From: Paramoeba atlantica
Taxonomy: Eukaryota; Protista; Discosea
Reading direction: 5' to 3'
Length of the DNA stretch: 64,000 bases
Assembly (NCBI GenBank): GCA_977017575.1
Contig: CDRNVI010000056.1
Location: 384,884 to 448,883, forward strand
In this document: positions 19,116 through 60,038 of the stretch, piece after piece
How the letters are laid out: each line of letters starts with the position of its first letter
How positions within the stretch are numbered: position 1 is the stretch's first letter
Position numbers and translations under genes: made by a program
The notes under the pieces: model-generated
Seen by the model: only the letters and a program-made list of their open reading frames with translations
Told to the model about the DNA's origin: nothing
The model's database searches: none

Positions 19116-19141
19116 CCGCTGTGAGCACACAATCGACGGAA

Positions 19142-19204
19142 GCGTCCATACCCAAGTGGTTAAGGGGCCTGACTTGAAATCAGGTGTGTTCTCACGCGCA
19201 GGTT
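19142..19204 (+). pseudogene. Truncated tRNA-Ser(TGA) at the left array border
   Basis: Identical to array tRNA up to GCAGGTT, then a partial duplication of TGTGTTCTCACGCGCAGG; 3' T arm and acceptor strand are missing. Confidence 0.9.
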
Positions 19205-20450
19205 GACGCGTAGGATGTGTTCTCACGCGCAGGATGAAAGTCACGCTCAGGAAAAGTGTACCGCTTTTTAGAGCATCCTATCTCAAAATTCAAAATGACG
19301 TCAGATTTACCTCTTTCCGCCTGCACGGTGAAGGGGCGTTTTCAAAAATCTCTGGACGCGACGTTTGCATGACTTCCGTGCATGGCGTGCGTCGATTGCG
19401 AAACGCCAAACCAGCAAGCTATATCTCCTGAGTGGTCGTGCTTCGAGCGATATTTTCTGTAGAGATAGAGTTTTTCCGTTAGTCAGTATGATTGCGAAAC
19501 AAAACGTGGGTTTCGCCAGACCAGTTTTTGTCCGTTCTTCCCTGAATCAAATCTTCAAATTTTTTAACCCTTTCTACTTGATGAGTGTTCTGAGCGCTCT
19601 TATTTTGCTCCGATGTTTGCTTTGGGCACTCTTTTTACATGATTTCACTGATACTATAAGACTTCCCCTCTTCTAACGCAAGAATTTGTTGTCATCGGAC
19701 ATTCTTTTAGTCAAATCAATGCTTGATTGCACAAGCTTCCTGCATCTCAAGGGGGGGTTGTATTTCTCTATACCTCTTTCACTTTTCACCTGCTCTTCCA
19801 AGCAACAGGGTCACAGGGCGCGCGCGTATTGTAATAGTGTGGTGGAAAAACGTCGGTTTCACACGAAACTCGCATCCACCGTGCGACCCCATTCCGTGGA
19901 GAACGATCTTTGTTTTCTTCGATCGCACTGATTCCGTTAGATGCACAGAGCGTGATTTCACGTGAATCGAACAATTCCGCGAGATGTTTTACTTGGGGCA
20001 AAGCAGGGCAGCACATGAACAATGAAAACAGGACGCGCAATGGCGCGGAACACCTTCCACGTGACACCTTCCGAAACGCGTTCTGCACAATCCAGGTATA
20101 AAACAACGAATTTCTTCGCCCGGCCGTTGCAAAGACCCACCCCTTACCGATAGATTTCGTAGCTCTGCTCTAAACGTGAACGCATCGTGCTCAACCTCTC
20201 TTCCCGACTGTGTCATCGCAAAAATTGTATGTGTCACTTCTGGGCCGTTCGCATGGGCATGTGTTGGGCACACTCAAACCCCCATTGCATTCATCAATGC
20301 GACCTACGGTTGTGAATGTCGCCTTGCTTGGGGGGGGGGCTGTAAGGATCGTTAAGCGAGCGAAATCGGGGAGTTTCCATTATGACATGAATTAGCAAGG
20401 TAAAGTGCACCGCTATGGACACACAAAATTCGAGACACACCACGACGGAA

Positions 20451-20531
20451 GCGTCCATACCCAAGTGGTTAAGGGGCCTGACTTGAAATCAGGTGTGTTC
20501 TCACGCGCAGGTTCGAACCCTGCTGGGCGCG
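20451..20531 (+). tRNA. tRNA-Ser(TGA) copy 1
   Basis: Cloverleaf: GCGTCCA/TGGGCGC acceptor, CCTGA-CTTGAAA-TCAGG anticodon arm, long variable arm, GCAGG-TTCGAAC-CCTGC T arm, discriminator G, followed by T5 terminator. Confidence 0.95.
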
Positions 20532-21936
20532 TTTTTGCGATTCTCTTCGTTCACAATCGTGTGGCCGCTTTTGGGCGCGCGCGAGAGATGCAACGTGAAT
20601 CGCAGAAGCAATGGTACATTTTAGGGTATTTTCTTTGCTGAAATGAAGTCTTTTTGGCCTGTGTAGCAGATGACGTTTTGGCGGCAGAGACGGTGAATGG
20701 GTAGATGGCCGTGCGCGTGTCAAATGTAAAAGCCCGAAAAGTGTACCGCTTTTTAGCGCATCATATCTTAAAATTCAAAATGACGTCAGATTTACCTCTT
20801 TCCGCCTGCACGGTGAAGGGGGGTTTTCAGATATCTCTGGACGCGACGTTTGCATGACTTCCGTGCATGGCGTGCGTCGATTGCGAAACGCCGAACCAGC
20901 AAGCTACACCTCCTGAGTGGTCGTGCTTCGCGCGATATTTTCTGTAGAGATAGAGTTTTTCCGTTAGTCAGTATGATTGCGAAACAAAACGTGGGTTTCG
21001 CCAGTCCACTTTTTGTCCGTTCTTCCCTGAATCAAATCTTAAACAATTTTAACCCTTTCTAATTGATGAGTGTTCTGATCGCTCGTGCTTTGCTCTGATA
21101 TTTGCTTTGGGCACTCTTTTCACATGATTTCACTGATACTATAAGACTTCCCCTCTTCTAACGCAAGAATTTGTTGTCATCGGACATTCTTTTAGTCAAA
21201 TCAATGCTTGATTGCACAAGCTTCCTGCATCTCAAGGGGGGGGTTGTATTTCTCTATACCTCTTTCACTTTTCACCTGCTCTTCCAAGCAACAGGGTCAC
21301 AGGGCGCGCGCGTATTGTAATAGTGTGGTGGAAAAACGTCGGTTTCACACGAAACTCGCATCCACCGTGCGACCCCATTCCGTGGAGAACGATCTTTGTT
21401 TTCTTCGATCGCACTGATTCCGTTAGATGCACAGAGCGTGATTTCACGTGAATCGAACAATTCCGCGAGATGTTTTACTTGGGGCAAAGCATGGCAGCAC
21501 ATGAACAATGAAAACAGGACGCGCAATGGCGCGGAACACCTTCCACGTGACACCTTCCGAAACGCGTTCTGCACAATCCAGGTATAAAACAACGAATTTC
21601 TTCGCCCGGCCGTTGCAAAGACCCACCCCTTACCGATAGATTTCGTAGCTCTGCTCTAAACGTGAACGCATCGTGCTCAACCTCTCTTCCCGACTATGTC
21701 ATCGCAAAAATTGTATGTGTCACTTCTGGGCCGTTCGCATGGGCATGTGTTGGGCACACTCAAACCCCCATTGCATTCATCAATGCGACCTACGGTTGTG
21801 AATGTCGCCTTGCTTGGGGGGGGGGCTGTAAGGATCGTTAAGCGAGCGAAATCGGGGAGTTTCCATTATGACATGAATTAGCAAGGTAAAGTGCACCGCT
21901 ATGGACACACAAAATTCGAGACACACCACGACGGAA

Positions 21937-22017
21937 GCGTCCATACCCAAGTGGTTAAGGGGCCTGACTTGAAATCAGGTGTGTTCTCACGCGCAGGTTC
22001 GAACCCTGCTGGGCGCG
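21937..22017 (+). tRNA. tRNA-Ser(TGA) copy 2
   Basis: Identical to copy 1. Confidence 0.95.
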
Positions 22018-23426
22018 TTTTTGCGATTCTCTTCGTTCACAATCGTGTGGCCGCTTTTGGGCGCGCGCGAGAGACGCAACGTGAATCGCAGAAGCAATGG
22101 TACATTTTAGGGTATTTTCTTTGCTGAAATGAAGTCTTTTTGGCCTGTGTAGCAGATGACGTTTTGGCGGCAGAGACGGTGAATGGGTAGATGGCCGTGC
22201 GCGTGTCAAATGTAAAAGCCCGAAAAGTGTACCGCTTTTTAGCGCATCATATCTTAAAATTCAAAATGACGTCAGATTTACCTCTTTCCGCCTGCACGGT
22301 GAAGGGGGGTTTTCAGATATCTCTGGACGCGACGTTTGCATGACTTCCGTGCATGGCGTGCGTCGATTGCGAAACGCCGAACCAGCAAGCTACACCTCCT
22401 GAGTGGTCGTGCTTCGCGCGATATTTTCTGTAGAGATAGAGTTTTTCCGTTAGTCAGTATGATTGCGAAACAAAACGTGGGTTTCGCCAGTCCACTTTTT
22501 GTCCGTTCTTCCCTGAATCAAATCTTAAACAATTTTAACCCTTTCTAATTGATGAGTGTTCTGATCGCTCGTGCTTTGCTCTGATATTTGCTTTGGGCAC
22601 TCTTTTCACATGATTTCACTGATACTATAAGACTTCCCCTCTTCTAACGCAAGAATTTGTTGTCATCGGACATTCTTTTGGTCAAATCAATGCTTGATTG
22701 CACAAGCTTCCTGCATCTCAAGGGGGGGTTGTATTTCTCTATACCTCTTTCACTTTTCACCTGCTCTTCCAAGCAACAGGGTCACAGGGCGCGCGCGTAT
22801 TGTAATAGTGTGGTGGAAAAACGTCGGTTTCACACGAAACTCGCATCCACCGTGCGACCCCATTCCGTGGAGAACGATCTTTGTTTTCTTCGATCGCACT
22901 GATTCCGTTAGATGCACAGAGCGTGATTTCACGTGAATCGAACAATTCCGCGAGATGTTTTACTTGGGGCAAAGCATGGAAGCACATGAACAATGAAAAC
23001 AGGACGCGCAATGGCGCGGAACACCTTCCACGTGACACCTTCCGAAACGCGTTCTGCACAACCCAGGTATAAAACAACGAATTTCTTCGCCCGGCCGTTG
23101 CAAAGACCCACCCCTTACCGATAGATTTCGTAGCTCTGCTCTAAACGTGAACGCATCGTGCTCAACCTCTCTTCCCGACTATGTCATCGCAAAAATTGTA
23201 TGTGTCACTTCTGGGCCGTTCGCATGGGCATGTGTTGGGCACACTCAAACCCCCATTGCATTCATCAATGCGACCTACGGTTGTGAATGTCGCCTTGCTT
23301 GGGGGGGGGGGGGGGATGTAAGGATCGTTAAGCGAGCGAAATCGGGGAGTTTCCATTATGACATGAATTAGCAAGGTAAAGTGCACCGCTATGGACACAC
23401 AAAATTCGAGACACACCACGACGGAA

Positions 23427-23507
23427 GCGTCCATACCCAAGTGGTTAAGGGGCCTGACTTGAAATCAGGTGTGTTCTCACGCGCAGGTTCGAACCCTGCT
23501 GGGCGCG
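23427..23507 (+). tRNA. tRNA-Ser(TGA) copy 3
   Basis: Identical to copy 1. Confidence 0.95.
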
Positions 23508-32325: not shown

Positions 32326-32406
32326 GCGTCCATACCCAAGTGGTTAAGGGGCCTGACTTGAAATCAGGTGTGTTCTCACGCGCAGGTTCGAACCGTGCTG
32401 GGCGCG
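32326..32406 (+). tRNA. tRNA-Ser(TGA) copy 9, T-stem variant
   Basis: 3' T-stem CCTGC changed to CGTGC (G:G mismatch). Confidence 0.85.
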
Positions 32407-33815
32407 TTTTTGCGATTCTCTTCGTTCACAATCGTGTGGCCGCTTTTGGGCGCGCGCGAGAGACGCAACGTGAATCGCAGAAGCAATGGTACATTTTAGG
32501 GTATTTCTTTGCTGAAATGAAGTCTTTTTGGCCTGTGTAGCAGATGACGTTTTGGCGGCAGAGACGGTGAATGGGTAGATGGCCGTGCGCGTGTCAAATG
32601 TAAAAGCCCGAAAAGTGTACCGCTTTTTAGCGCATCATATCTTAAAATTCAAAATGACGTCAGATTTACCTCTTTCCGCCTGCACGGTGAAGGGGGGTTT
32701 TCAGATATCTCTGGACGCGACGTTTGCATGACTTCCGTGCATGGCGTGCGTCGATTGCGAACGCCGAACCAGCAAGCTACACCTCCTGAGTGGTCGTGCT
32801 TCGCGCGATATTTTCTGTAGAGATAGAGTTTTTCCGTTAGTCAGTATGATTGCGAAACAAAACGTGGGTTTCGCCAGTCCACTTTTTGTCCGTTCTTCCC
32901 TGAATCAAATCTTAAACAATTTTAACCCTTTCTAATTGATGAGCGTTTCTGATCGCTCGTGCTTTGCTCTGATATTTGCTTTGGGGCACTCTTTTCACAT
33001 GATTTCACTGATACTATAAGACTTCCCCTCTTCTAACGCAAGAATTTGTTGTCATCGGACATTCTTTTAGTCAAATCAATGCTTGATTGCACAAGCTTCC
33101 TGCATCTCAAGGGGGGGGGTTGTATTTCTCTACACCTCTTTCACTTTTCACCTGCTCTTCCAAGCAACAGGGTCACAGGGCGCGCGCGTATTGTAATAGT
33201 GTGGTGGAAAAACGTCGGTTTCACACGAAACTCGCATCCACCGTGCGACCCCATTCCGTGGAGAACGATCTTTGTTTTCTTCGATCGCACTGATTCCGTT
33301 AGATGCACAGAGCGTGATTTCACGTGAATCGAACAATTCCGCGAGATGTTTTACTTGGGCAAAGCAGGGCAGCACATGAACAATGAAAACAGGACGCGCA
33401 ATGGCGCGGAACACCTTCCACGTGACACCTTCCGAAACGCGTTCTGCACAATCCAGGTATAAAACAACGAATTTCTTCGCCCGGCCGTTGCAAAGACCCA
33501 CCCCTTACCGATAGATTTCGTAGCTCTGCTCTAAACGTGAACGCATCGTGCTCAACCTCTCTTCCCGACTATGTCATCGCAAAAATTGTATGTGTCACTT
33601 CTGGGCCGTTCGCATGGGCATGTGTTGGGCACACTCAAACCCCCATTGCATTCATCAATGCGACCTACGGTTGTGAATGTCGCCTTGCTTGGGGGGGGGG
33701 GGGGCTGTAAGGATCGTTAAGCGAGCGAAATCGGGGAGTTTCCATTATGACATGAATTAGCAAGGTAAAGTGCACCGCTATGGACACACAAAATTCGAGA
33801 CACACCACGACGGAA

Positions 33816-33896
33816 GCGTCCATACCCAAGTGGTTAAGGGGCCTGACTTGAAATCAGGTGTGTTCTCACGCGCAGGTTCGAACCGTGCTGGGCGCG
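33816..33896 (+). tRNA. tRNA-Ser(TGA) copy 10, T-stem variant
   Basis: CGTGC T-stem. Confidence 0.85.
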
Positions 33897-35307
33897 TTTT
33901 TGCGATTCTCTTCGTTCACAATCGTGTGGCCGCTTTTGGGCGCGCGCGAGAGACGCAACGTGAATCGCAGAAGCAATGGTACATTTTAGGGTATTTTCTT
34001 TGCTGAAATGAAGTCTTTTTGGCCTGTGTAGCAGATGACGTTTTGGCGGCAGAGACGGTGAATGGGTAGATGGCCGTGCGCGTGTCAAATGTAAAAGCCC
34101 GAAAAGTGTACCGCTTTTTAGCGCATCATATCTTAAAATTCAAAATGACGTCAGATTTACCTCTTTCCGCCTGCACGGTGAAGGGGGGTTTTCAGATATC
34201 TCTGGACGCGACGTTTGCATGACTTCCGTGCATGGCGTGCGTCGATTGCGAAACGCCGAACCAGCAAGCTACACCTCCTGAGTGGTCGTGCTTCGCGCGA
34301 TATTTTCTGTAGAGATAGAGTTTTTCCGTTAGTCAGTATGATTGCGAAACAAAACGTGGGTTTCGCCAGTCCACTTTTTGTCCGTTCTTCCCTGAATCAA
34401 ATCTTAAACAATTTTAACCCTTTCTAATTGATGAGCGTTCTGATCGCTCGTGCTTTGCTCTGATATTTGCTTTGGGCACTCTTTTCACATGATTTCACTG
34501 ATACTATAAGACTTCCCCTCTTCTAACGCAAGAATTTGTTGTCATCGGACATTCTTTTAGTCAAATCAATGCTTGATTGCACAAGCTTCCTGCATCTCAA
34601 GGGGGGGGGTTGTATTTCTCTACACCTCTTTCACTTTTCACCTGCTCTTCCAAGCAACAGGGTCACAGGGCGCGCGCGTATTGTAATAGTGTGGTGGAAA
34701 AACGTCGGTTTCACACGAAACTCGCATCCACCGTGCGACCCCATTCCGTGGAGAACGATCTTTGTTTTCTTCGATCGCACTGATTCCGTTAGATGCACAG
34801 AGCGTGATTTCACGTGAATCGAACAATTCCGCGAGATGTTTTACTTGGGGCAAAGCAGGGCAGCACATGAACAATGAAAACAGGACGCGCAATGGCGCGG
34901 AACACCTTCCACGTGACACCTTCCGAAACGCGTTCTGCACAATCCAGGTATAAAACAACGAATTTCTTCGCCCGGCCGTTGCAAAGACCCACCCCTTACC
35001 GATAGATTTCGTAGCTCTGCTCTAAACGTGAACGCATCGTGCTCAACCTCTCTTCCCGACTATGTCATCGCAAAAATTGTATGTGTCACTTCTGGGCCGT
35101 TCGCATGGGCATGTGTTGGGCACACTCAAACCCCCATTGCATTCATCAATGCGACCTACGGTTGTGAATGTCGCCTTGCTTGGGGGGGGGGGGGGGCTGT
35201 AAGGATCGTTAAGCGAGCGAAATCGGGGAGTTTCCATTATGACATGAATTAGCAAGGTAAAGTGCACCGCTATGGACACACAAAATTCGAGACACACCAC
35301 GACGGAA

Positions 35308-35388
35308 GCGTCCATACCCAAGTGGTTAAGGGGCCTGACTTGAAATCAGGTGTGTTCTCACGCGCAGGTTCGAACCGTGCTGGGCGCG
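35308..35388 (+). tRNA. tRNA-Ser(TGA) copy 11, T-stem variant
   Basis: CGTGC T-stem. Confidence 0.85.
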
Positions 35389-36799
35389 TTTTTGCGATTC
35401 TCTTCGTTCACAATCGTGTGGCCGCTTTTGGGCGCGCGCGAGAGACGCAACGTGAATCGCAGAAGCAATGGTACATTTTAGGGTATTTTCTTTGCTGAAA
35501 TGAAGTCTTTTTGGCCTGTGTAGCAGATGACGTTTTGGCGGCAGAGACGGTGAATGGGTAGATGGCCGTGCGAGTGTCAAATGTAAAAGCCCGAAAAGTG
35601 TACCGCTTTTTAGCGCATCATATCTTAAAATTCAAAATGACGTCAGATTTACCTCTTTCCGCCTGCACGGTGAAGGGGGGTTTTCAGATATCTCTGGACG
35701 CGACGTTTGCATGACTTCCGTGCATGGCGTGCGTCGATTGCGAAACGCCGAACCAGCAAGCTACACCTCCTGAGTGGTCGTGCTTCGCGCGATATTTTCT
35801 GTAGAGATAGAGTTTTTCCGTTAGTCAGTATGATTGCGAAACAAAACGTGGGTTTCGCCAGTCCACTTTTTGTCCGTTCTTCCCTGAATCAAATCTTAAA
35901 CAATTTTAACCCTTTCTAATTGATGAGCGTTCTGATCGCTCGTGCTTTGCTCTGATATTTGCTTTGGGCACTCTTTTCACATGATTTCACTGATACTATA
36001 AGACTTCCCCTCTTCTAACGCAAGAATTTGTTGTCATCGGACATTCTTTTAGTCAAATCAATGCTTGATTGCACAAGCTTCCTGCATCTCAAGGGGGGGG
36101 GTTGTATTTCTCTACACCTCTTTCACTTTTCACCTGCTCTTCCAAGCAACAGGGTCACAGGGCGCGCGCGTATTGTAATAGTGTGGTGGAAAAACGTCGG
36201 TTTCACACGAAACTCGCATCCACCGTGCGACCCCATTCCGTGGAGAACGATCTTTGTTTTCTTCGATCGCACTGATTCCGTTAGATGCACAGAGCGTGAT
36301 TTCACGTGAATCGAACAATTCCGCGAGATGTTTTACTTGGGGCAAAGCAGGGCAGCACATGAACAATGAAAACAGGACGCGCAATGGCGCGGAACACCTT
36401 CCACGTGACACCTTCCGAAACGCGTTCTGCACAATCCAGGTATAAAACAACGAATTTCTTCGCCCGGCCGTTGCAAAGACCCACCCCTTACCGATAGATT
36501 TCGTAGCTCTGCTCTAAACGTGAACGCATCGTGCTCAACCTCTCTTCCCGACTATGTCATCGCAAAAATTGTATGTGTCACTTCTGGGCCGTTCGCATGG
36601 GCATGTGTTGGGCACACTCAAACCCCCATTGCATTCATCAATGCGACCTACGGTTGTGAATGTCGCCTTGCTTGGGGGGGGGGGGGGGCTGTAAGGATCG
36701 TTAAGCGAGCGAAATCGGGGAGTTTCCATTATGACATGAATTAGCAAGGTAAAGTGCACCGCTATGGACACACAAAATTCGAGACACACCACGACGGAA

Positions 36800-36880
36800 G
36801 CGTCCATACCCAAGTGGTTAAGGGGCCTGACTTGAAATCAGGTGTGTTCTCACGCGCAGGTTCGAACCGTGCTGGGCGCG
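36800..36880 (+). tRNA. tRNA-Ser(TGA) copy 12, T-stem variant
   Basis: CGTGC T-stem. Confidence 0.85.
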
Positions 36881-38291
36881 TTTTTGCGATTCTCTTCGTT
36901 CACAATCGTGTGGCCGCTTTTGGGCGCGCGCGAGAGACGCAACGTGAATCGCAGAAGCAATGGTACATTTTAGGGTATTTTCTTTGCTGAAATGAAGTCT
37001 TTTTGGCCTGTGTAGCAGATGACGTTTTGGCGGCAGAGACGGTGAATGGGTAGATGGCCGTGCGAGTGTCAAATGTAAAAGCCCGAAAAGTGTACCGCTT
37101 TTTAGCGCATCATATCTTAAAATTCAAAATGACGTCAGATTTACCTCTTTCCGCCTGCACGGTGAAGGGGGGTTTTCAGATATCTCTGGACGCGACGTTT
37201 GCATGACTTCCGTGCATGGCGTGCGTCGATTGCGAAACGCCGAACCAGCAAGCTACACCTCCTGAGTGGTCGTGCTTCGCGCGATATTTTCTGTAGAGAT
37301 AGAGTTTTTCCGTTAGTCAGTATGATTGCGAAACAAAACGTGGGTTTCGCCAGTCCACTTTTTGTCCGTTCTTCCCTGAATCAAATCTTAAACAATTTTA
37401 ACCCTTTCTAATTGATGAGCGTTCTGATCGCTCGTGCTTTGCTCTGATATTTGCTTTGGGCACTCTTTTCACATGATTTCACTGATACTATAAGACTTCC
37501 CCTCTTCTAACGCAAGAATTTGTTGTCATCGGACATTCTTTTAGTCAAATCAATGCTTGATTGCACAAGCTTCCTGCATCTCAAGGGGGGGGGTTGTATT
37601 TCTCTACACCTCTTTCACTTTTCACCTGCTCTTCCAAGCAACAGGGTCACAGGGCGCGCGCGTATTGTAATAGTGTGGTGGAAAAACGTCGGTTTCACAC
37701 GAAACTCGCATCCACCGTGCGACCCCATTCCGTGGAGAACGATCTTTGTTTTCTTCGATCGCACTGATTCCGTTAGATGCACAGAGCGTGATTTCACGTG
37801 AATCGAACAATTCCGCGAGATGTTTTACTTGGGGCAAAGCAGGGCAGCACATGAACAATGAAAACAGGACGCGCAATGGCGCGGAACACCTTCCACGTGA
37901 CACCTTCCGAAACGCGTTCTGCACAATCCAGGTATAAAACAACGAATTTCTTCGCCCGGCCGTTGCAAAGACCCACCCCTTACCGATAGATTTCGTAGCT
38001 CTGCTCTAAACGTGAACGCATCGTGCTCAACCTCTCTTCCCGACTATGTCATCGCAAAAATTGTATGTGTCACTTCTGGGCCGTTCGCATGGGCATGTGT
38101 TGGGCACACTCAAACCCCCATTGCATTCATCAATGCGACCTACGGTTGTGAATGTCGCCTTGCTTGGGGGGGGGGGGGGGCTGTAAGGATCGTTAAGCGA
38201 GCGAAATCGGGGAGTTTCCATTATGACATGAATTAGCAAGGTAAAGTGCACCGCTATGGACACACAAAATTCGAGACACACCACGACGGAA

Positions 38292-38372
38292 GCGTCCATA
38301 CCCAAGTGGTTAAGGGGCCTGACTTGAAATCAGGTGTGTTCTCACGCGCAGGTTCGAACCGTGCTGGGCGCG
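38292..38372 (+). tRNA. tRNA-Ser(TGA) copy 13, T-stem variant
   Basis: CGTGC T-stem. Confidence 0.85.
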
Positions 38373-39782
38373 TTTTTGCGATTCTCTTCGTTCACAATCG
38401 TGTGGCCGCTTTTGGGCGCGCGCGAGAGACGCAACGTGAATCGCAGAAGCAATGGTACATTTTAGGGTATTTTCTTTGCTGAAATGAAGTCTTTTTGGCC
38501 TGTGTAGCAGATGACGTTTTGGCGGCAGAGACGGTGAATGGGTAGATGGCCGTGCGAGTGTCAAATGTAAAAGCCCGAAAAGTGTACCGCTTTTTAGCGC
38601 ATCATATCTTAAAATTCAAAATGACGTCAGATTTACCTCTTTCCGCCTGCACGGTGAAGGGGGGTTTTCAGATATCTCTGGACGCGACGTTTGCATGACT
38701 TCCGTGCATGGCGTGCGTCGATTGCGAAACGCCGAACCAGCAAGCTACACCTCCTGAGTGGTCGTGCTTCGCGCGATATTTTCTGTAGAGATAGAGTTTT
38801 TCCGTTAGTCAGTATGATTGCGAAACAAAACGTGGGTTTCGCCAGTCCACTTTTTGTCCGTTCTTCCCTGAATCAAATCTTAAACAATTTTAACCCTTTC
38901 TAATTGATGAGCGTTCTGATCGCTCGTGCTTTGCTCTGATATTTGCTTTGGGCACTCTTTTCACATGATTTCACTGATACTATAAGACTTCCCCTCTTCT
39001 AACGCAAGAATTTGTTGTCATCGGACATTCTTTTAGTCAAATCAATGCTTGATTGCACAAGCTTCCTGCATCTCAAGGGGGGGGGTTGTATTTCTCTACA
39101 CCTCTTTCACTTTTCACCTGCTCTTCCAAGCAACAGGGTCACAGGGCGCGCGCGTATTGTAATAGTGTGGTGGAAAAACGTCGGTTTCACACGAAACTCG
39201 CATCCACCGTGCGACCCCATTCCGTGGAGAACGATCTTTGTTTTCTTCGATCGCACTGATTCCGTTAGATGCACAGAGCGTGATTTCACGTGAATCGAAC
39301 AATTCCGCGAGATGTTTTACTTGGGGCAAAGCAGGGCAGCACATGAACAATGAAAACAGGACGCGCAATGGCGCGGAACACCTTCCACGTGACACCTTCC
39401 GAAACGCGTTCTGCACAATCCAGGTATAAAACAACGAATTTCTTCGCCCGGCCGTTGCAAAGACCCACCCCTTACCGATAGATTTCGTAGCTCTGCTCTA
39501 AACGTGAACGCATCGTGCTCAACCTCTCTTCCCGACTATGTCATCGCAAAAATTGTATGTGTCACTTCTGGGCCGTTCGCATGGGCATGTGTTGGGCACA
39601 CTCAAACCCCCATTGCATTCATCAATGCGACCTACGGTTGTGAATGTCGCCTTGCTTGGGGGGGGGGGGGGCTGTAAGGATCGTTAAGCGAGCGAAATCG
39701 GGGAGTTTCCATTATGACATGAATTAGCAAGGTAAAGTGCACCGCTATGGACACACAAAATTCGAGACACACCACGACGGAA

Positions 39783-39863
39783 GCGTCCATACCCAAGTGG
39801 TTAAGGGGCCTGACTTGAAATCAGGTGTGTTCTCACGCGCAGGTTCGAACCGTGCTGGGCGCG
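39783..39863 (+). tRNA. tRNA-Ser(TGA) copy 14, T-stem variant
   Basis: CGTGC T-stem. Confidence 0.85.
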
Positions 39864-41273
39864 TTTTTGCGATTCTCTTCGTTCACAATCGTGTGGCCGC
39901 TTTTGGGCGCGCGCGAGAGACGCAACGTGAATCGCAGAAGCAATGGTACATTTTAGGGTATTTTCTTTGCTGAAATGAAGTCTTTTTGGCCTGTGTAGCA
40001 GATGACGTTTTGGCGGCAGAGACGGTGAATGGGTAGATGGCCGTGCGAGTGTCAAATGTAAAAGCCCGAAAAGTGTACCGCTTTTTAGCGCATCATATCT
40101 TAAAATTCAAAATGACGTCAGATTTACCTCTTTCCGCCTGCACGGTGAAGGGGGGTTTTCAGATATCTCTGGACGCGACGTTTGCATGACTTCCGTGCAT
40201 GGCGTGCGTCGATTGCGAAACGCCGAACCAGCAAGCTACACCTCCTGAGTGGTCGTGCTTCGCGCGATATTTTCTGTAGAGATAGAGTTTTTCCGTTAGT
40301 CAGTATGATTGCGAAACAAAACGTGGGTTTCGCCAGTCCACTTTTTGTCCGTTCTTCCCTGAATCAAATCTTAAACAATTTTAACCCTTTCTAATTGATG
40401 AGCGTTCTGATCGCTCGTGCTTTGCTCTGATATTTGCTTTGGGCACTCTTTTCACATGATTTCACTGATACTATAAGACTTCCCCTCTTCTAACGCAAGA
40501 ATTTGTTGTCATCGGACATTCTTTTAGTCAAATCAATGCTTGATTGCACAAGCTTCCTGCATCTCAAGGGGGGGGGTTGTATTTCTCTACACCTCTTTCA
40601 CTTTTCACCTGCTCTTCCAAGCAACAGGGTCACAGGGCGCGCGCGTATTGTAATAGTGTGGTGGAAAAACGTCGGTTTCACACGAAACTCGCATCCACCG
40701 TGCGACCCCATTCCGTGGAGAACGATCTTTGTTTTCTTCGATCGCACTGATTCCGTTAGATGCACAGAGCGTGATTTCACGTGAATCGAACAATTCCGCG
40801 AGATGTTTTACTTGGGGCAAAGCAGGGCAGCACATGAACAATGAAAACAGGACGCGCAATGGCGCGGAACACCTTCCACGTGACACCTTCCGAAACGCGT
40901 TCTGCACAATCCAGGTATAAAACAACGAATTTCTTCGCCCGGCCGTTGCAAAGACCCACCCCTTACCGATAGATTTCGTAGCTCTGCTCTAAACGTGAAC
41001 GCATCGTGCTCAACCTCTCTTCCCGACTATGTCATCGCAAAAATTGTATGTGTCACTTCTGGGCCGTTCGCATGGGCATGTGTTGGGCACACTCAAACCC
41101 CCATTGCATTCATCAATGCGACCTACGGTTGTGAATGTCGCCTTGCTTGGGGGGGGGGGGGGCTGTAAGGATCGTTAAGCGAGCGAAATCGGGGAGTTTC
41201 CATTATGACATGAATTAGCAAGGTAAAGTGCACCGCTATGGACACACAAAATTCGAGACACACCACGACGGAA

Positions 41274-41354
41274 GCGTCCATACCCAAGTGGTTAAGGGGC
41301 CTGACTTGAAATCAGGTGTGTTCTCACGCGCAGGTTCGAACCGTGCTGGGCGCG
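41274..41354 (+). tRNA. tRNA-Ser(TGA) copy 15, T-stem variant
   Basis: CGTGC T-stem. Confidence 0.85.
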
Positions 41355-42764
41355 TTTTTGCGATTCTCTTCGTTCACAATCGTGTGGCCGCTTTTGGGCG
41401 CGCGCGAGAGACGCAACGTGAATCGCAGAAGCAATGGTACATTTTAGGGTATTTTCTTTGCTGAAATGAAGTCTTTTTGGCCTGTGTAGCAGATGACGTT
41501 TTGGCGGCAGAGACGGTGAATGGGTAGATGGCCGTGCGAGTGTCAAATGTAAAAGCCCGAAAAGTGTACCGCTTTTTAGCGCATCATATCTTAAAATTCA
41601 AAATGACGTCAGATTTACCTCTTTCCGCCTGCACGGTGAAGGGGGGTTTTCAGATATCTCTGGACGCGACGTTTGCATGACTTCCGTGCATGGCGTGCGT
41701 CGATTGCGAAACGCCGAACCAGCAAGCTACACCTCCTGAGTGGTCGTGCTTCGCGCGATATTTTCTGTAGAGATAGAGTTTTTCCGTTAGTCAGTATGAT
41801 TGCGAAACAAAACGTGGGTTTCGCCAGTCCACTTTTTGTCCGTTCTTCCCTGAATCAAATCTTAAACAATTTTAACCCTTTCTAATTGATGAGCGTTCTG
41901 ATCGCTCGTGCTTTGCTCTGATATTTGCTTTGGGCACTCTTTTCACATGATTTCACTGATACTATAAGACTTCCCCTCTTCTAACGCAAGAATTTGTTGT
42001 CATCGGACATTCTTTTAGTCAAATCAATGCTTGATTGCACAAGCTTCCTGCATCTCAAGGGGGGGGGTTGTATTTCTCTACACCTCTTTCACTTTTCACC
42101 TGCTCTTCCAAGCAACAGGGTCACAGGGCGCGCGCGTATTGTAATAGTGTGGTGGAAAAACGTCGGTTTCACACGAAACTCGCATCCACCGTGCGACCCC
42201 ATTCCGTGGAGAACGATCTTTGTTTTCTTCGATCGCACTGATTCCGTTAGATGCACAGAGCGTGATTTCACGTGAATCGAACAATTCCGCGAGATGTTTT
42301 ACTTGGGGCAAAGCAGGGCAGCACATGAACAATGAAAACAGGACGCGCAATGGCGCGGAACACCTTCCACGTGACACCTTCCGAAACGCGTTCTGCACAA
42401 TCCAGGTATAAAACAACGAATTTCTTCGCCCGGCCGTTGCAAAGACCCACCCCTTACCGATAGATTTCGTAGCTCTGCTCTAAACGTGAACGCATCGTGC
42501 TCAACCTCTCTTCCCGACTATGTCATCGCAAAAATTGTATGTGTCACTTCTGGGCCGTTCGCATGGGCATGTGTTGGGCACACTCAAACCCCCATTGCAT
42601 TCATCAATGCGACCTACGGTTGTGAATGTCGCCTTGCTTGGGGGGGGGGGGGGCTGTAAGGATCGTTAAGCGAGCGAAATCGGGGAGTTTCCATTATGAC
42701 ATGAATTAGCAAGGTAAAGTGCACCGCTATGGACACACAAAATTCGAGACACACCACGACGGAA

Positions 42765-42845
42765 GCGTCCATACCCAAGTGGTTAAGGGGCCTGACTTGA
42801 AATCAGGTGTGTTCTCACGCGCAGGTTCGAACCGTGCTGGGCGCG
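42765..42845 (+). tRNA. tRNA-Ser(TGA) copy 16, T-stem variant
   Basis: CGTGC T-stem. Confidence 0.85.
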
Positions 42846-44253
42846 TTTTTGCGATTCTCTTCGTTCACAATCGTGTGGCCGCTTTTGGGCGCGCGCGAGA
42901 GACGCAACGTGAATCGCAGAAGCAATGGTACATTTTAGGGTATTTTCTTTGCTGAAATGAAGTCTTTTTGGCCTGTGTAGCAGATGACGTTTTGGCGGCA
43001 GAGACGGTGAATGGGTAGATGGCCGTGCGAGTGTCAAATGTAAAAGCCCGAAAAGTGTACCGCTTTTTAGCGCATCATATCTTAAAATTCAAAATGACGT
43101 CAGATTTACCTCTTTCCGCCTGCACGGTGAAGGGGGGTTTTCAGATATCTCTGGACGCGACGTTTGCATGACTTCCGTGCATGGCGTGCGTCGATTGCGA
43201 AACGCCGAACCAGCAAGCTACACCTCCTGAGTGGTCGTGCTTCGCGCGATATTTTCTGTAGAGATAGAGTTTTTCCGTTAGTCAGTATGATTGCGAAACA
43301 AAACGTGGGTTTCGCCAGTCCACTTTTTGTCCGTTCTTCCCTGAATCAAATCTTAAACAATTTTAACCCTTTCTAATTGATGAGCGTTCTGATCGCTCGT
43401 GCTTTGCTCTGATATTTGCTTTGGGCACTCTTTTCACATGATTTCACTGATACTATAAGACTTCCCCTCTTCTAACGCAAGAATTTGTTGTCATCGGACA
43501 TTCTTTTAGTCAAATCAATGCTTGATTGCACAAGCTTCCTGCATCTCAAGGGGGGGGGTTGTATTTCTCTACACCTCTTTCACTTTTCACCTGCTCTTCC
43601 AAGCAACAGGGTCACAGGGCGCGCGCGTATTGTAATAGTGTGGTGGAAAAACGTCGGTTTCACACGAAACTCGCATCCACCGTGCGACCCCATTCCGTGG
43701 AGAACGATCTTTGTTTTCTTCGATCGCACTGATTCCGTTAGATGCACAGAGCGTGATTTCACGTGAATCGAACAATTCCGCGAGATGTTTTACTTGGGGC
43801 AAAGCAGGGCAGCACATGAACAATGAAAACAGGACGCGCAATGGCGCGGAACACCTTCCACGTGACACCTTCCGAAACGCGTTCTGCACAATCCAGGTAT
43901 AAAACAACGAATTTCTTCGCCCGGCCGTTGCAAAGACCCACCCCTTACCGATAGATTTCGTAGCTCTGCTCTAAACGTGAACGCATCGTGCTCAACCTCT
44001 CTTCCCGACTATGTCATCGCAAAAATTGTATGTGTCACTTCTGGGCCGTTCGCATGGGCATGTGTTGGGCACACTCAAACCCCCATTGCATTCATCAATG
44101 CGACCTACGGTTGTGAATGTCGCCTTGCTTGGGGGGGGGGGGCTGTAAGGATCGTTAAGCGAGCGAAATCGGGGAGTTTCCATTATGACATGAATTAGCA
44201 AGGTAAAGTGCACCGCTATGGACACACAAAATTCGAGACACACCACGACGGAA

Positions 44254-46620: not shown

Positions 46621-48117
46621 CTTGTTGACTCTTACCGCTATCTGGGAAACATTCAGGATTCAGGCGTTTCTTCGCCAGTAAAAGACCGCTTAAGGCTCAC
46701 CTGGGCCGCATTTCGGAAGCTCAAGGGCATTTGGGACTCGCCACTGAGTGCATCAACAAAACTGCGTTTGTTTGATTGCCTCGTTTACCCAATCATGACC
46801 TTTGGTGCCGCTTCGCTTTCCATATCCAACAAAATGCTTCGGCAAACAGAAGTTGAGCTCAATATGATGCGAAGATTTTGCTGTAATTGTGCTAAATTGG
46901 ACGAGTTTGGACACTGCTACCCTATCGAGTCACTTTATTGCGGCACTCCTCGTTTCTCCACCGTACATCGCGTTAGTCGGGCTAAAATTGTTGGTCACAT
47001 TCTAAGGCACTCATTCATGTTTCGAGATCTTATCCAGTGGAAATGCAGCGATAGGAAACGAAATCTCTCACCAAGCGAAGCTTGCTTTCACGATCTGGAC
47101 ATTACCGAAGAACAAGCCCTCGTATACGCTCAGGATCGAGATCACTGGAAAAAGTTATGTGAAGATTTAAAGGTAGCACTCGAACCGCTTCCGGATTACG
47201 AAAGACTCTCTTCTCCTAGATGGAAAAGTAAACATGCCCACGCCTTGAAGCAAGATACGCCTTACGATTTGCAATTTGTCGAAGAAAGTTCTGATCCTTT
47301 TCCATTAAAAGATGATGAGGTTCACTTCTATATTGATGGTTCAGTCCGTGCCTTGCGGGTGACAAACGAGATCAGAGCAGGTGCTGGAATTGTTGTGCTT
47401 CAACGATGGACAACCGATAAATGTTTTTCCTTAACATTAGATGTTGATAGTGCCGAGCAAGCTGAGGCTGAATCTTTTCGAGAGGCGCTTAAAAGAATAC
47501 CGGACGGAGCAAAAGATATCGTAGTACACACAGATTCGTTCTATGTGTGGAACTTCTTTCATCACGTTCGCATCCGGAGACGGGTAATAGGGTATGACCG
47601 CGTCGTCAACAGAAACATTCTACAAGATATAGATCATCAGGTGCGGAAACTAAAATCTCAGAATGTTAATTTGTATGTGTGCAAAGTTAAATCTCATAAT
47701 GGGAACGAATATAACGACAAAGCTGATGTCTTGGCTCTTTCGGCGTCACGAAGGCCGTTAAAATCACAAGAGGCAAAGAGGTTGAAGACGACAAAAGCTC
47801 CTTCTTCTTCTTCTTCTGACCCAATATCCTCGCCAGAAGCGACACTCATATTGCGCCCAAGAAGGAATGTTGACACTATTTCATCCAAACGCAAGAATAA
47901 CACTACTGCAAGTGGGGCTCTATCCAAAAAGGGTAGCTCACTGTCTGGAGAGCCTGGAGTGAAACCGTCTGAAAAAACGAATGCTATGATCCTGAGTAGG
48001 CCTGATGTCGGTAAAGAAAAAAGTTGCAAGGGAAATAGGGAGTCTGATAAGATCGTGGAAACAAAGGGAAAGAAGTCTCCCAAGAGAAAGAAGGCTTCAC
48101 GAAAATTAGAACAGTAG
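46621..48117 (+). CDS. Partial ORF: RT C-terminus/thumb + RNase H + Lys/Ser-rich tail
   Basis: Frame is open from the first inserted base (LVDSYRYLG...TWAAFRKLKGIW...TKLRLF, AQDRDHWKKL). RNase H motifs FYIDGS, QAEAE, VHTDS, KSHNG, NDKAD are intact. Confidence 0.9.
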   Translation, partial: LVDSYRYLGNIQDSGVSSPVKDRLRLTWAAFRKLKGIWDSPLSASTKLRLFDCLVYPIMTFGAASLSISNKMLRQTEVELNMMRRFCCNCAKLDEFGHCYPIESLYCGTPRFSTVHRVSRAKIVGHILRHSFMFRDLIQWKCSDRKRNLSPSEACFHDLDITEEQALVYAQDRDHWKKLCEDLKVALEPLPDYERLSSPRWKSKHAHALKQDTPYDLQFVEESSDPFPLKDDEVHFYIDGSVRALRVTNEIRAGAGIVVLQRWTTDKCFSLTLDVDSAEQAEAESFREALKRIPDGAKDIVVHTDSFYVWNFFHHVRIRRRVIGYDRVVNRNILQDIDHQVRKLKSQNVNLYVCKVKSHNGNEYNDKADVLALSASRRPLKSQEAKRLKTTKAPSSSSSDPISSPEATLILRPRRNVDTISSKRKNNTTASGALSKKGSSLSGEPGVKPSEKTNAMILSRPDVGKEKSCKGNRESDKIVETKGKKSPKRKKASRKLEQ

Positions 48118-48168
48118 TATCTTTAATCGGTTTTTAACCGATCTATTAGGATAGGATAGGATAGGAGG
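46621..48168 (+). mobile_element. 5'-truncated non-LTR retrotransposon (RTE-like, with RNase H) inserted in the array spacer
   Basis: 13-bp TSD ATTGTAATAGTGT (46608-46620 and 48169-48181); short 3' UTR with hairpin ATCGGTT-TTT-AACCGAT and an (AGGAT)3 tail. Confidence 0.93.
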
Positions 48169-50288: not shown

Positions 50289-50369
50289 GCGTCCATACCC
50301 AAGTGGTTAAGGGGCCTGACTTGAAATCAGGTGTGTTCTCACGCGCAGGTTCGAACCCTGCTGGGCGCG
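50289..50369 (+). tRNA. tRNA-Ser(TGA) copy 20
   Basis: Identical to copy 1. Confidence 0.95.
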
Positions 50370-51776
50370 TTTTTGCGATTCTCTTCGTTCACAATCGTGT
50401 GGCCGCTTTTGGGCGCGCGCGAGAGACGCAACGTGAATCGCAGAAGCAATGGTACATTTTAGGGTATTTTCTTTGCTGAAATGAAGTCTTTTTGGCCTGT
50501 GTAGCAGATGACGTTTTGGCGGCAGAGACGGTGAATGGGTAGATGGCCGTGCGCGTGTCAAATGTAAAAGCCCGAAAAGTGTACCGCTTTTTAGCGCATC
50601 ATATCTTAAAATTCAAAATGACGTCAGATTTACCTCTTTCCGCCTGCACGGTGAAGGGGGGTTTTCAGATATCTCTGGACGCGACGTTTGCATGACTTCC
50701 GTGCATGGCGTGCGTCGATTGCGAAACGCCGAACCAGCAAGCTACACCTCCTGAGTGGTCGTGCTTCGCGCGATATTTTCTGTAGAGATAGAGTTTTTCC
50801 GTTAGTCAGTATGATTGCGAAACAAAACGTGGGTTTCGCCAGTCCACTTTTTGTCCGTTCTTCCCTGAATCAAATCTTAAACAATTTTAACCCTTTCTAA
50901 TTGATGAGCGTTCTGATCGCTCGTGCTTTGCTCTGATATTTGCTTTGGGCACTCTTTTCACATGATTTCACTGATACTATAAGACTTCCCCTCTTCTAAC
51001 GCAAGAATTTGTTGTCATCGGACATTCTTTTAGTCAAATCAATGCTTGATTGCACAAGCTTCCTGCATCTCAAGGGGGGGGGTTGTATTTCTCTACACCT
51101 CTTTCACTTTTCACCTGCTCTTCCAAGCAACAGGGTCACAGGGCGCGCGCGTATTGTAATAGTGTGGTGGAAAAACGTCGGTTTCACACGAAACTCGCAT
51201 CCACCGTGCGACCCCATTCCGTGGAGAACGATCTTTGTTTTCTTCGATCGCACTGATTCCGTTAGATGCACAGAGCGTGATTTCACGTGAATCGAACAAT
51301 TCCGCGAGATGTTTTACTTGGGGCAAAGCAGGGCAGCACATGAACAATGAAAACAGGACGCGCAATGGCGCGGAACACCTTCCACGTGACACCTTCCGAA
51401 ACGCGTTCTGCACAATCCAGGTATAAAACAACGAATTTCTTCGCCCGGCCGTTGCAAAGACCCACCCCTTACCGATAGATTTCGTAGCTCTGCTCTAAAC
51501 GTGAACGCATCGTGCTCAACCTCTCTTCCCGACTATGTCATCGCAAAAATTGTATGTGTCACTTCTGGGCCGTTCGCATGGGCATGTGTTGGGCACACTC
51601 AAACCCCCATTGCATTCATCAATGCGACCTACGGTTGTGAATGTCGCCTTGCTTGGGGGGGGGGGCTGTAAGGATCGTTAAGCGAGCGAAATCGGGGAGT
51701 TTCCATTATGACATGAATTAGCAAGGTAAAGTGCACCGCTATGGACACACAAAATTCGAGACACACCACGACGGAA

Positions 51777-51857
51777 GCGTCCATACCCAAGTGGTTAAGG
51801 GGCCTGACTTGAAATCAGGTGTGTTCTCACGCGCAGGTTCGAACCCTGCTGGGCGCG
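51777..51857 (+). tRNA. tRNA-Ser(TGA) copy 21
   Basis: Identical to copy 1. Confidence 0.95.
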
Positions 51858-52924
51858 TTTTTGCGATTCTCTTCGTTCACAATCGTGTGGCCGCTTTTGG
51901 GCGCGCGCGAGAGACGCAACGTGAATCGCAGAAGCAATGGTACATTTTAGGGTATTTTCTTTGCTGAAATGAAGTCTTTTTGGCCTGTGTAGCAGATGAC
52001 GTTTTGGCGGCAGAGACGGTGAATGGGTAGATGGCCGTGCGCGTGTCAAATGTAAAAGCCATAAAAGTGTACCGCTTTTTAGCGCATCATATCTTAAAAT
52101 TCAAAATGACGTCAGATTTACCTCTTTCCGCCTGCACGGTGAAGGGGGGTTTTCAGATATCTCTGGACGCGACGTTTGCATGACTTCCGTGCATGGCGTG
52201 CGTCGATTGCGAAACGCCGAACCAGCAAGCTACACCTCCTGAGTGGTCGTGCTTCGCGCGATATTTTCTGTAGAGATAGAGTTTTTCCGTTAGTCAGTAT
52301 GATTGCGAAACAAAACGTGGGTTTCGCCAGTCCACTTTTTGTCCGTTCTTCCCTGAATCAAATCTTAAACAATTTTAACCCTTTCTAATTGATGAGTGTT
52401 CTGATCGCTCGTGCTTTGCTCTGATATTTGCTTTGGGCACTCTTTTCACATGATTTCACTGATACTATAAGACTTCCCCTCTTCTAACGCAAGAATTTGT
52501 TGTCATCGGACATTCTTTTAGTCAAATCAATGCTTGATTGCACAAGCTTCCTGCATCTCAAGGGGGGGGGTTGTATTTCTCTACACCTCTTTCACTTTTC
52601 ACCTGCTCTTCCAAGCAACAGGGTCACAGGGCGCGCGCGTATTGTAATAGTGTGGCGGAAAAACGTCGGTTTCACACGAAACTCGCATCCACCGTGCGAC
52701 CCCATTCCGTGGAGAACGATCTTTGTTTTCTTCGATCGCACTGATTCCGTTAGATGCACAGAGCGTGATTTCACGTGAATCGAACAATTCCGCGAGATAT
52801 TTTACTTGGGGCAAAGTAGGGCAGCACATGAACAATGAAAACAGGACGCGCAATGGCGCGGAAGACCTTCCACGTGACACCTTCCGAAACGCGTTCTGCA
52901 CAATCCAGGTATAAAACAACGAAT

Positions 52925-54627
52925 AGAAACGAAGAAAGAGGAAGAAAGAGGAAGAAAGAGGAAGAAAGAGGGAGAAAGAGGAAGAAAGAGGAAGAAAGAG
53001 GAAGAAAGAGGAAGAAAGAGGAAGAAAGAGGAAGAAAGAGGAAGAAAGAGGAAGAAAGAGGAAGAAAGAGGAAGAAAGAGGAAGAAAGAGGAAGAAAGAG
53101 GAAGAAAGAGGAAGAAAGAGGAAGAAAGAGGAAGAAAGAGGAAGAAAGAGGAAGAAAGAGGAAGAAAGAGGAAGAAAGAGGAAGAAAGAGGAAGAAAGAG
53201 GAAGAAAGAGGAAGAAAGAGGAAGAAAGAGGAAGAAAGAGGAAGAAAGAGGAAGAAAGAGGAAGAAAGAGGAAGAAAGAGGAAGAAAGAGGAAGAAAGAG
53301 GAAGAAAGAGGAAGAAAGAGGAAGAAAGAGGAAGAAAGAGGAAGAAAGAGGAAGAAAGAGGAAGAAAGAGGAAGAAAGAGGAAGAAAGAGGAAGAAAGAG
53401 GAAGAAAGAGGAAGAAAGAGGAAGAAAGAGGAAGAAAGAGGAAGAAAGAGGAAGAAAGAGGAAGAAAGAGGAAGAAAGAGGAAGAAAGAGGAAGAAAGAG
53501 GAAGAAAGAGGAAGAAAGAGGAAGAAAGAGGAAGAAAGAGGAAGAAAGAGGAAGAAAGAGGAAGAAAGAGGAAGAAAGAGGAAGAAAGAGGAAGAAAGAG
53601 GAAGAAAGAGGAAGAAAGAGGAAGAAAGAGGAAGAAAGAGGAAGAAAGAGGAAGAAAGAGGAAGAAAGAGGAAGAAAGAGGAAGAAAGAGGAAGAAAGAG
53701 GAAGAAAGAGGAAGAAAGAGGAAGAAAGAGGAAGAAAGAGGAAGAAAGAGGAAGAAAGAGGAAGAAAGAGGAAGAAAGAGGAAGAAAGAGGAAGAAAGAG
53801 GAAGAAAGAGGAAGAAAGAGGAAGAAAGAGGAAGAAAGAGGAAGAAAGAGGAAGAAAGAGGAAGAAAGAGGAAGAAAGAGGAAGAAAGAGGAAGAAAGAG
53901 GAAGAAAGAGGAAGAAAGAGGAAGAAAGAGGAAGAAAGAGGAAGAAAGAGGAAGAAAGAGGAAGAAAGAGGAAGAAAGAGGAAGAAAGAGGAAGAAAGAG
54001 GAAGAAAGAGGAAGAAAGAGGAAGAAAGAGGAAGAAAGAGGAAGAAAGAGGAAGAAAGAGGAAGAAAGAGGAAGAAAGAGGAAGAAAGAGGAAGAAAGAG
54101 GAAGAAAGAGGAAGAAAGAGGAAGAAAGAGGAAGAAAGAGGAAGAAAGAGGAAGAAAGAGGAAGAAAGAGGAAGAAAGAGGAAGAAAGAGGAAGAAAGAG
54201 GAAGAAAGAGGAAGAAAGAGGAAGAAAGAGGAAGAAAGAGGAAGAAAGAGGAAGAAAGAGGAAGAAAGAGGAAGAAAGAGGAAGAAAGAGGAAGAAAGAG
54301 GAAGAAAGAGGAAGAAAGAGGAAGAAAGAGGAAGAAAGAGGAAGAAAGAGGAAGAAAGAGAGGAAGAAAGAGGAAGAAAGAGGAAGAAAGAGGAAGAAAG
54401 AGGAAGAAAGAGGAAGAAAGAGGAAGAAAGAGGAAGAAAGAGGAAGAAAGAGGAAGAAAGAGGAAGAAAGAGGAAGAAAGAGGAAGAAAGAGGAAGAAAG
54501 AGGAAGAAAGAGGAAGAAAGAGGAAGAAAGAGGAAGAAAGAGGAAGAAAGAGGAAGAAAGAGGAAGAAAGAGGAAGAAAGAGGAAGAAAGAGGAAGAAAG
54601 AGGAAGAAAGAGGAAGAAAGAGGAAGA
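52925..54627 (+). repeat. (GAAGAAAGAG)n 10-bp purine-only tandem repeat, ~170 copies
   Basis: Perfect units from 52931 except one GGAGAAAGAG near the start and a 2-nt (AG) phase shift at 54361. Confidence 0.99.
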
Positions 54628-58776: not shown

Positions 58777-58806
58777 AACCTACCGTAAAAAACAGCTCTC
58801 GAGATA

Positions 58807-60025: not shown

Positions 60026-60038
60026 AGTGGGGTTGTCA

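Follow-up and report, generated by a model that had tools for sequence, protein, structure and literature searches.

Does a long tandem array of one transfer RNA (tRNA) gene, bounded by a simple repeat on either side, form part of the apparatus by which a chromosome ends, or does it merely lie beneath such an end? The question is raised by a 64,000-nucleotide stretch (hereinafter the window) of the assembly deposited for Paramoeba atlantica (GenBank assembly: GCA_977017575.1; contig CDRNVI010000056.1, hereinafter C56). The window spans C56:384884-448883, and its last base is also the last base of the 448,883-bp contig. An initial annotation, made from the sequence alone, had described here a satellite, 21 head-to-tail tRNA-Ser(TGA) genes and a purine repeat, and had proposed them as a chromosome-end system. 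Our analysis instead makes it probable that this is the true end of one kinetoplastid-like chromosome, where a locus-specific amplification of tRNA-Ser(UGA) lies under the telomere and owes its size to recombination, and that the bacterial DNA following it in the contig is a chimeric extension.

A homogeneous tRNA-Ser(UGA) array joined to a purine repeat

ARAGORN recovered 21 tRNA-Ser(TGA) genes between 20451 and 51857, all on the + strand and all passing the Rfam threshold (scores of 50.8–61.8 bits against 29 bits). They occur one to a unit in a tandem array (20451-52925, +), each with a B box and with a T5 run (terminator) directly 3′ of the gene. The head-to-tail units have a period of ~1,490 bp and are at least 99.2% identical, the spacing being 1454–1494 bp with the single exception of a 3053-bp interval. 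The spacer is a complex sequence whose only simple stretches are G runs and two short (CG)n tracts: within every unit one G run measures G10-G17 and another G7-G10, and GGGCGCGCGCG forms two tracts. The spacer contains no open reading frame (ORF) longer than 106 aa among those listed, and an Rfam search at a relaxed threshold recovered no match besides the tRNA, and no second gene. Ahead of these units lies a first, decayed one (19142-20450, +) with ~50 substitutions relative to the others, whose 3′-truncated tRNA constitutes a 22nd copy (19142-19210; Rfam 34.7 bits). The proximal boundary of the array is an 18-bp minisatellite, (CCATCGTTTTTGGTAAGA)n (16934-19113, +; 122.8 copies with an 84% match in Tandem Repeats Finder [TRF]). 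At the distal boundary the last unit is cut at position 1149, and right after this mid-unit junction begins a 1.7-kb tract of a purine-only 10-mer, (GAAGAAAGAG)n (52931-54627, +; TRF: 169.5 copies, 99% match, no indels). ARAGORN, Rfam and TRF thus bear out the anatomy and coordinates given in the initial annotation, from the 21 head-to-tail genes and their G tracts to the flanking repeats.

Full units differ from each other by 0–12 substitutions per ~1,490 bp, and six adjacent ones (35308-44253) by none, with only the length of the G runs varying. The most diverged units are those at the edges, namely the truncated proximal one, with its ~50 differences, and the distal one beside the purine repeat (7–12). 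Twelve canonical tRNA copies are identical, with a cloverleaf, a long variable arm, a UGA anticodon, the B box and no encoded CCA; one further copy has a change in the variable arm that leaves the fold intact. The tRNAs of eight adjacent units (32326-44253, +; tRNA copies at 32326-42845), more than one third of the 21, share a C-to-G change at position 70. This replaces a T-stem pair with a G-G mismatch; the Rfam score drops from 61.2 to 50.8 bits, and the minimum free energy fold no longer has the canonical T arm. The 3,053-bp unit contains a 5′-truncated fragment of a non-LTR retrotransposon, i.e., a long interspersed nuclear element (LINE) (46621-48168, +; 1.55 kb), with an RNase H ORF (RNase_H, E 7e-14) and a tail of the GGATA type, whose insertion duplicated 11 bp of target sequence (TTGTAATAGTG). 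An identical insertion occurs in 13 further units on contigs C96 and C106, giving 14 units in total. Near-identical units, diverged edges, blocks of variants and a co-amplified insertion, i.e., all the features by which concerted evolution is recognised, are hence found together in this array. Given the blocks of identical units, the diverged edges, the spread of the T-stem variant and the co-copied LINE, we infer that unequal recombination has kept the units alike, single copies being only weakly selected.

The purine 10-mer as a probable telomere

We searched the whole assembly for the pattern (GAAGAAAGAG)n, taking into account match positions, contig ends and the loci that were read, with contig ends standing in for physical ends. 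The repeat is confined to contigs C1-C105. It lies at the start of eight contigs (C13, C16, C29, C42, C43, C47, C75 and C80), always as the pyrimidine strand, and at the end of C14, C25, C41, C43, C46, C60, C78 and C105, always as the purine strand; near the ends of C56 and C77 it is again the purine strand, with bacterial tails beyond. The purine, G-containing strand accordingly runs outward, 5′ to 3′, at 18 out of 18 contig ends, such that at least 18 ends are capped, including both ends of the 800-kb contig C43. The other matches are internal (on C1, C4, C21, C45, C48 and at 481 kb on C60), and the seven that were read, i.e., all but that on C21, are shorter than 105 bp. Those terminal tracts that were read measure 0.2 to ~8 kb and consist to 91–100% of the perfect 10-mer, a regularity expected for templated synthesis. 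A satellite at which the assembly happened to break would show both polarities, which argues for a telomere, and (GAAGAAAGAG)n is probably the telomere of this genome. The sequence (TTAGGG)5 is absent from the whole assembly, and literature searches on the doubled 10-mer found nothing. Since the repeat caps at least 18 contigs with the polarity of a telomere and directly joins a truncated array unit, the array in the window is truly terminal and hence subtelomeric in the strict sense. In placing the array at a chromosome end, the initial annotation was therefore correct.

As the repeat is joined in mid-unit, the pattern expected from breakage and re-capping, the chromosome may have broken or eroded within the array and then acquired a new cap. 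We also considered whether the near-perfect state of the repeat on C56 marks a recent healing event, and rejected this, all terminal tracts being equally regular. Separately, on C16 (719-3753) and C43 (930-3964) the tract flips from the purine to the pyrimidine strand at ~0.8–1.0 kb from the contig start, which looks like a fold-back artefact of chromosome-end reads.

Bacterial DNA beyond the repeat

Directly beyond (GAAGAAAGAG)n the contig continues for 9.4 kb as bacterial DNA with a gammaproteobacterial-type gene order (54628-64000). The initial annotation had recognised neither the bacterial nature of this tail nor the fact that window and contig stop at one and the same base. This tail opens with the last 48 codons of rsmI (profile positions 245–286 of 287) and is densely packed with genes for malic enzyme (with an ACT domain), a POT transporter, ZIP, TatD, holB, tmk, YceG and a class IV aminotransferase. 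A frameshift splits holB (60423-61449, −) into two overlapping ORFs, which fits the unpolished, low-coverage sequence of a single chimeric read. No second copy of the tail exists in the assembly, and C56 stops past it without a second terminal repeat. The best matches to the malic enzyme share at most 64% identity and come from scattered phyla, and so do not identify the bacterium; a scan of the tail for sigma-70 promoters and terminators gave no difference from shuffled sequence. Two comparable joins were found. On C77, the sequence that comes after (GAAGAAAGAG)n (71374-73847) is a 2.5-kb stretch coding for a SusD-like (Bacteroidota-like) protein, pointing to an unrelated type of bacterium. 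On C106, bacterial DNA (1-8170) coding for two AMP-binding (AMP-ligase) enzymes and KAS III-like ORFs meets an array unit at 8171, exactly at the 3′ end of the tRNA and inside an open bacterial ORF. As there are three such joins, which involve bacterial fragments unrelated to one another, interrupt a gene in every case and all lie at the extremity of a contig, the bacterial tails are best read as chimeric assembly extensions of dead ends.

Two apparent eukaryotic genomes in one assembly

A second terminal repeat, (TTTAGGG)n, is abundant in this assembly. It has the polarity of a telomere and is found only on contigs C138-C239, and no contig bears both it and (GAAGAAAGAG)n. By terminal repeat, the contigs fall into two disjoint sets, C1-C137 together with C220 and C138-C239. 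KMP-11, a kinetoplastid protein family, is encoded on C2 and C12 (E 5e-43), both of which share the 18-bp satellite and dispersed repeats of the window. Canonical, intron-split actin (500 bits; a second copy in split pieces) is found only on C163 and C151 of the TTTAGGG set, and the purine-repeat set has only divergent actin-like genes (at most 129 bits). With KMP-11 accompanying the purine repeat and canonical actin only TTTAGGG, the nuclear genomes of two eukaryotes seem to be present in the assembly, and the array looks to belong to a kinetoplastid-like one with the purine 10-mer as its telomere. Placing the array in an amoeba that hosts a kinetoplastid had also been considered and was given up on the same two grounds, KMP-11 on the repeat-sharing contigs and canonical actin only on the TTTAGGG contigs.

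Two further observations concern these contig sets. The first appears as two haplotypes (C2/C12, C42/C77, C48/C90 and C56/C72). In the TTTAGGG set, tRNA genes occur by the dozen on contigs C143, C149, C144, C177 and C161; the same Rfam scores recur among them (73.1, 75.3 and 75.9 bits), and they are spaced 10–100 kb apart and lie nearly all on one strand per contig.

One locus, not a general feature of chromosome ends

If arrays of this kind belonged to the end system of the organism, as the initial annotation had supposed, they might be sought at the other capped ends. We read the 0.7–1.5 kb adjoining the terminal repeat at 15 other ends (14 of them distinct) and found no tRNA there. Nor did these stretches share any sequence with each other or with the window, with the exception of C42 and C77, whose ends are 99.6% identical and which are probably two haplotypes. 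On C13, C14, C16, C25, C29, C41, C43, C46, C47, C60 and C105 the repeat directly adjoins a unique sequence of normal GC content, which differs from end to end. The only tRNA arrays found were those of Ser(UGA), other high-scoring tRNAs being dispersed among the 63 of ~3,400 candidates that were scored. With the other capped ends lacking a tRNA or shared sequence in the stretch read, the tRNA array is a local amplification rather than a general chromosome-end system.

The core of this tRNA-Ser(UGA) has 117 copies in the genome. Twenty-two of these are in the window (the truncated copy included), 17 on C72 (period ~1479 bp, the array reaching the contig end), 16 on C57 (period ~1481 bp, running off the contig start), 17 on C96 (16 core matches and one copy with two 1-base insertions found by ARAGORN only), 14 on C106 (13 among the matches listed, 14 in the sequence) and 15 on C87 (irregularly spaced and in a different context), with one dispersed copy on C38; the remaining 17 lie outside the matches listed. 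The layout on C72, C57 and C87 is drawn from match coordinates only. A repeat-free 6.5-kb stretch of the window used as query showed C72:37747-43597 to be collinear with window positions 3-6500 at 98–99% identity. On C72, too, the array is immediately preceded by this satellite variant and opens with a short first unit (spacing of 1306 bp, against 1309 bp here). Given the collinear flank, the shared satellite variant and the matching first unit, C72 represents this same end, either as another haplotype or as a duplicate of very recent origin. C96 and C106 are built of these 1.49-kb units as well, and both tRNA variants recur on them in another order; being without a unique eukaryotic flank, they are unplaced pieces or further versions of this locus. 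All versions of the array share one polarity, with tRNA transcription directed outward. About 86 of the 117 copies accordingly trace to one chromosome end. The survey of contig ends for tRNA arrays called for by the initial annotation was thus carried out over the stretches read: it yielded none at the 15 capped ends, and the further array contigs turned out to be versions or unplaced pieces of the same locus.

As a separate observation, the C87 copies (at 6595-53395, 161051 and 175026) are all on one strand, at spacings of ~1.74–1.78 kb and 4–12 kb.

What maintains the array

The canonical copies have everything that a gene that RNA polymerase III (Pol III) transcribes as a tRNA needs, such that the array very probably supplies tRNA-Ser(UGA); judged by sequence, about 13 of its 21 copies look functional. 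The copy number does not look demand-driven. In five ORFs of the window (1,772 codons), UCA makes up 15% and UCU 34% of 209 serine codons; the impaired tRNA variant accounts for more than one third of the copies here; and the 117 copies of this one isoacceptor are about as many as the tRNA genes of an entire trypanosomatid (66–120 in total, in clusters of 2–10; PMC2695483). The idea that UCA codon demand drives the amplification, which the initial annotation had marked for checking, accordingly finds no support in this small local sample.

We therefore consider it unlikely that the array is an amplification for dosage, kept large by selection for the supply of tRNA-Ser(UGA), with its terminal position incidental. 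Such a role would agree with the 12 canonical copies and the variable-arm variant, with their intact folds, B boxes and T5 terminators, and with the paucity of dispersed copies of this tRNA (that on C38). Against it speak the local serine codon usage, the spread of the T-stem mismatch over a block of 8 of the 21 copies, the co-amplification of a dead LINE in 14 units and a copy number for one isoacceptor matching a full trypanosomatid tRNA gene set. The preferred reading, i.e., local amplification under a telomere, would account for these features by the following steps. A single Pol III gene, tRNA-Ser(UGA), lying in a 1.49-kb non-coding unit, would have been amplified into a tandem array extending from the dispersed 18-bp minisatellite out to a telomere made of the regular purine-only 10-mer (GAAGAAAGAG)n, the purine strand of which runs 5′ to 3′ outward. 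Unequal recombination between the units would then expand, contract and homogenise the array, i.e., bring about its concerted evolution, and could in the same way have spread both the tRNA variant, which is probably defective, and the insertion of a dead LINE. The copy number would be set by recombination at a permissive terminal position, rather than by codon demand or end protection, and the amplification might persist since subtelomeres tolerate unequal exchange.

A more structural part for the array can be envisaged in several forms. It is a distinctly improbable notion that a Pol III array of more than 80 copies is a working part of one chromosome end in a kinetoplastid where a purine-only 10-mer has taken the place of TTAGGG; transcription factor IIIC (TFIIIC) and Pol III would there form a barrier at which the last polycistron stops and by which the tip is buffered. 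Were it true, the array would parallel, independently, the tRNA arrays at the ends of Entamoeba chromosomes, and it might represent an intermediate stage in which array and telomere repeat coexist. In trypanosomatids single tRNA genes act as boundaries at the borders of transcription units. That the present array acts as such a boundary element, its co-directional Pol III genes ending the last polycistronic RNA polymerase II (Pol II) unit and insulating it from telomeric chromatin, strikes us as very unlikely. The last ordinary genes (1-5090) and all the tRNAs do point toward the tip, and the genome does look kinetoplastid; however, one or a few tRNA genes would suffice, and the other ends have no tRNA in the sequence read.

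Slightly further still from plausibility is an end system of the Entamoeba kind, in which tRNA arrays would be a regular structural part of the chromosome ends and Pol III/TFIIIC chromatin would protect or organise them independently of tRNA supply. The array does directly adjoin the terminal repeat, all its versions have the one polarity with outward transcription, its copy number is far above plausible demand with part of it made up of impaired copies, and there is a precedent in Entamoeba, every chromosome of which has tRNA arrays at one of its ends (bioRxiv 10.64898/2026.07.06.736064). Yet the 15 other capped ends are devoid of a tRNA and of shared sequence in the stretches read, a single isoacceptor was found arrayed, the end has its own regular terminal repeat, and the other array contigs are the same locus; hence, neither the end system proposed in the initial annotation nor its Entamoeba-like structural role is upheld. 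Finally, it is extremely improbable that the array is internal, with the purine tract no more than a common GA-rich satellite and the bacterial genes either truly acquired by lateral transfer or part of a chromosome that continues: 9.4 kb of DNA does follow the tract in the present assembly, but that DNA begins mid-gene, its holB is frameshifted and no telomere lies at its far end, (GAAGAAAGAG)n on C77 leads into an unrelated bacterial fragment, and a broken internal satellite would give both polarities rather than an outward one at 18 of 18 ends.

Several points weigh against local amplification under a telomere. The telomere reading is built on contig-end statistics. Neither a telomerase gene nor a template RNA was found; the search with the Pfam Telomerase_RBD profile had no match in the genome, TTTAGGG contigs included, and its control genomes were prokaryotic, so that this blank is uninformative. 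The assignment to a kinetoplastid is indirect, KMP-11 being on contigs that share repeats with the window and not on C56 itself. At the other ends the reach was 0.7–1.5 kb only, and arrays further inward would be missed. C72, C57, C96 and C106 all terminate inside arrays, which makes a second array-bearing chromosome end possible, and the 15 copies on C87 lie in a different context, with only the tRNA part matching the array unit. Lastly, the sample of serine codons, from five local ORFs, is small.

Genes and repeats proximal to the array

The last ordinary genes before the array (1-5090, +) are a PIP5K gene (Pfam PIP5K, E 2e-57) and LRR-family ORFs (LRR/LRRNT_2 matches), all oriented toward the chromosome tip. 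A search of the records outside their own genome for contigs that encode two ORFs of the window found none. These genes are followed by several dispersed repeat families (6600-7420, 7458-9006 and 10073-10182), among them a ~630-bp element with more than 40 copies at 86–90% identity, often paired with a 110-bp inverted piece, and by a 98/39-bp tandem repeat (7747-8466). Nearer to the array is a copy of a pogo/CENP-B-like DNA transposon (14077-16279, −; Pfam DDE_1 and CENP-B_N), which is dispersed, with copies at 95–97% identity on C37, C28, C220, C70, C87 and C10. Short tandem copies of a G-rich 17-mer (GGGGGGTGGTGAAGTAA) lie on both sides of it (13920-13992 and 16247-16296) and may be its terminal repeats. 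The 18-bp minisatellite family that bounds the array is likewise dispersed genome-wide (1,303 double-unit matches); the variant seen here, at 0–1 mismatch, occurs only in the window and at C72:54.2-56.9 kb, upstream of the array of that contig.

Comparison with known systems

Telomere-adjacent ribosomal DNA (rDNA) arrays undergo concerted evolution, and insertions of R elements or LINEs are co-amplified in them. The present array resembles them in its near-identical units, diverged edges and variant blocks and in a dead retrotransposon multiplied with the unit; it differs in that what is repeated is a tRNA gene of the Pol III type, where theirs are rRNA genes, and in that its LINE is not known as site-specific. 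In its mechanics, the array behaves like a telomere-adjacent rDNA array. Tandem tRNA arrays are known from plants and animals, as in the 1.5-kb Ser/Tyr units of Arabidopsis chromosome 1 and the 3.18-kb tDNA repeat of Xenopus. These too are kilobase-scale units repeated tens to hundreds of times; unlike the one described here, they are internal, with no telomere joined to them, and their units usually combine several types of tRNA. The terminal repeat, for its part, recalls telomeres of the telomerase type and their healing in being a short, precise repeat at the ends, with the G-containing strand outward, added onto varied non-telomeric sequence. Its unit is, however, 10 nt long, purine-only and T-free, as against the TTAGGG of known kinetoplastids. 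Our findings help establish (GAAGAAAGAG)n as the telomere of a kinetoplastid-type genome, which, if so, would be a sharp departure from TTAGGG.

Like the tRNA genes of trypanosomatids (Padilla-Mejia 2009, PMC2695483), those of the array are Pol III genes that have internal boxes, end in T-run terminators and lie in a genome of kinetoplastid type; the trypanosomatid genes, however, form small mixed clusters, and no single-isoacceptor tandem array this large is described there. For annotators, it is of note that three joins to bacterial DNA in this assembly are probably chimeric and that two eukaryotes, each with a telomere repeat of its own, seem to share it.

The closest parallel is with the tRNA arrays of Entamoeba (Clark 2006; Tawari 2008, PMC2652664; bioRxiv 10.64898/2026.07.06.736064), which also consist of head-to-tail units, of ~0.5–1.8 kb, at chromosome ends and in copy numbers far above need. 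However, Entamoeba arrays many isoacceptors, where here one isoacceptor, at one locus, was found arrayed; its spacers are rich in short tandem repeats (STRs), where the present spacer is complex and without them; its arrays are found at one end of essentially every chromosome, where the other ends read here have none; and it has no terminal repeat, the array itself being the end, where a regular (GAAGAAAGAG)n caps the array of the window. The terminal arrays of Entamoeba were proposed as stand-ins for telomeres. A second, unrelated lineage with a tRNA array directly under the chromosome cap makes the array and the cap distinguishable, and with the cap at every end examined and the array, in the sequence read, at one, it suggests that terminal tRNA arrays can be by-products of subtelomeric recombination.

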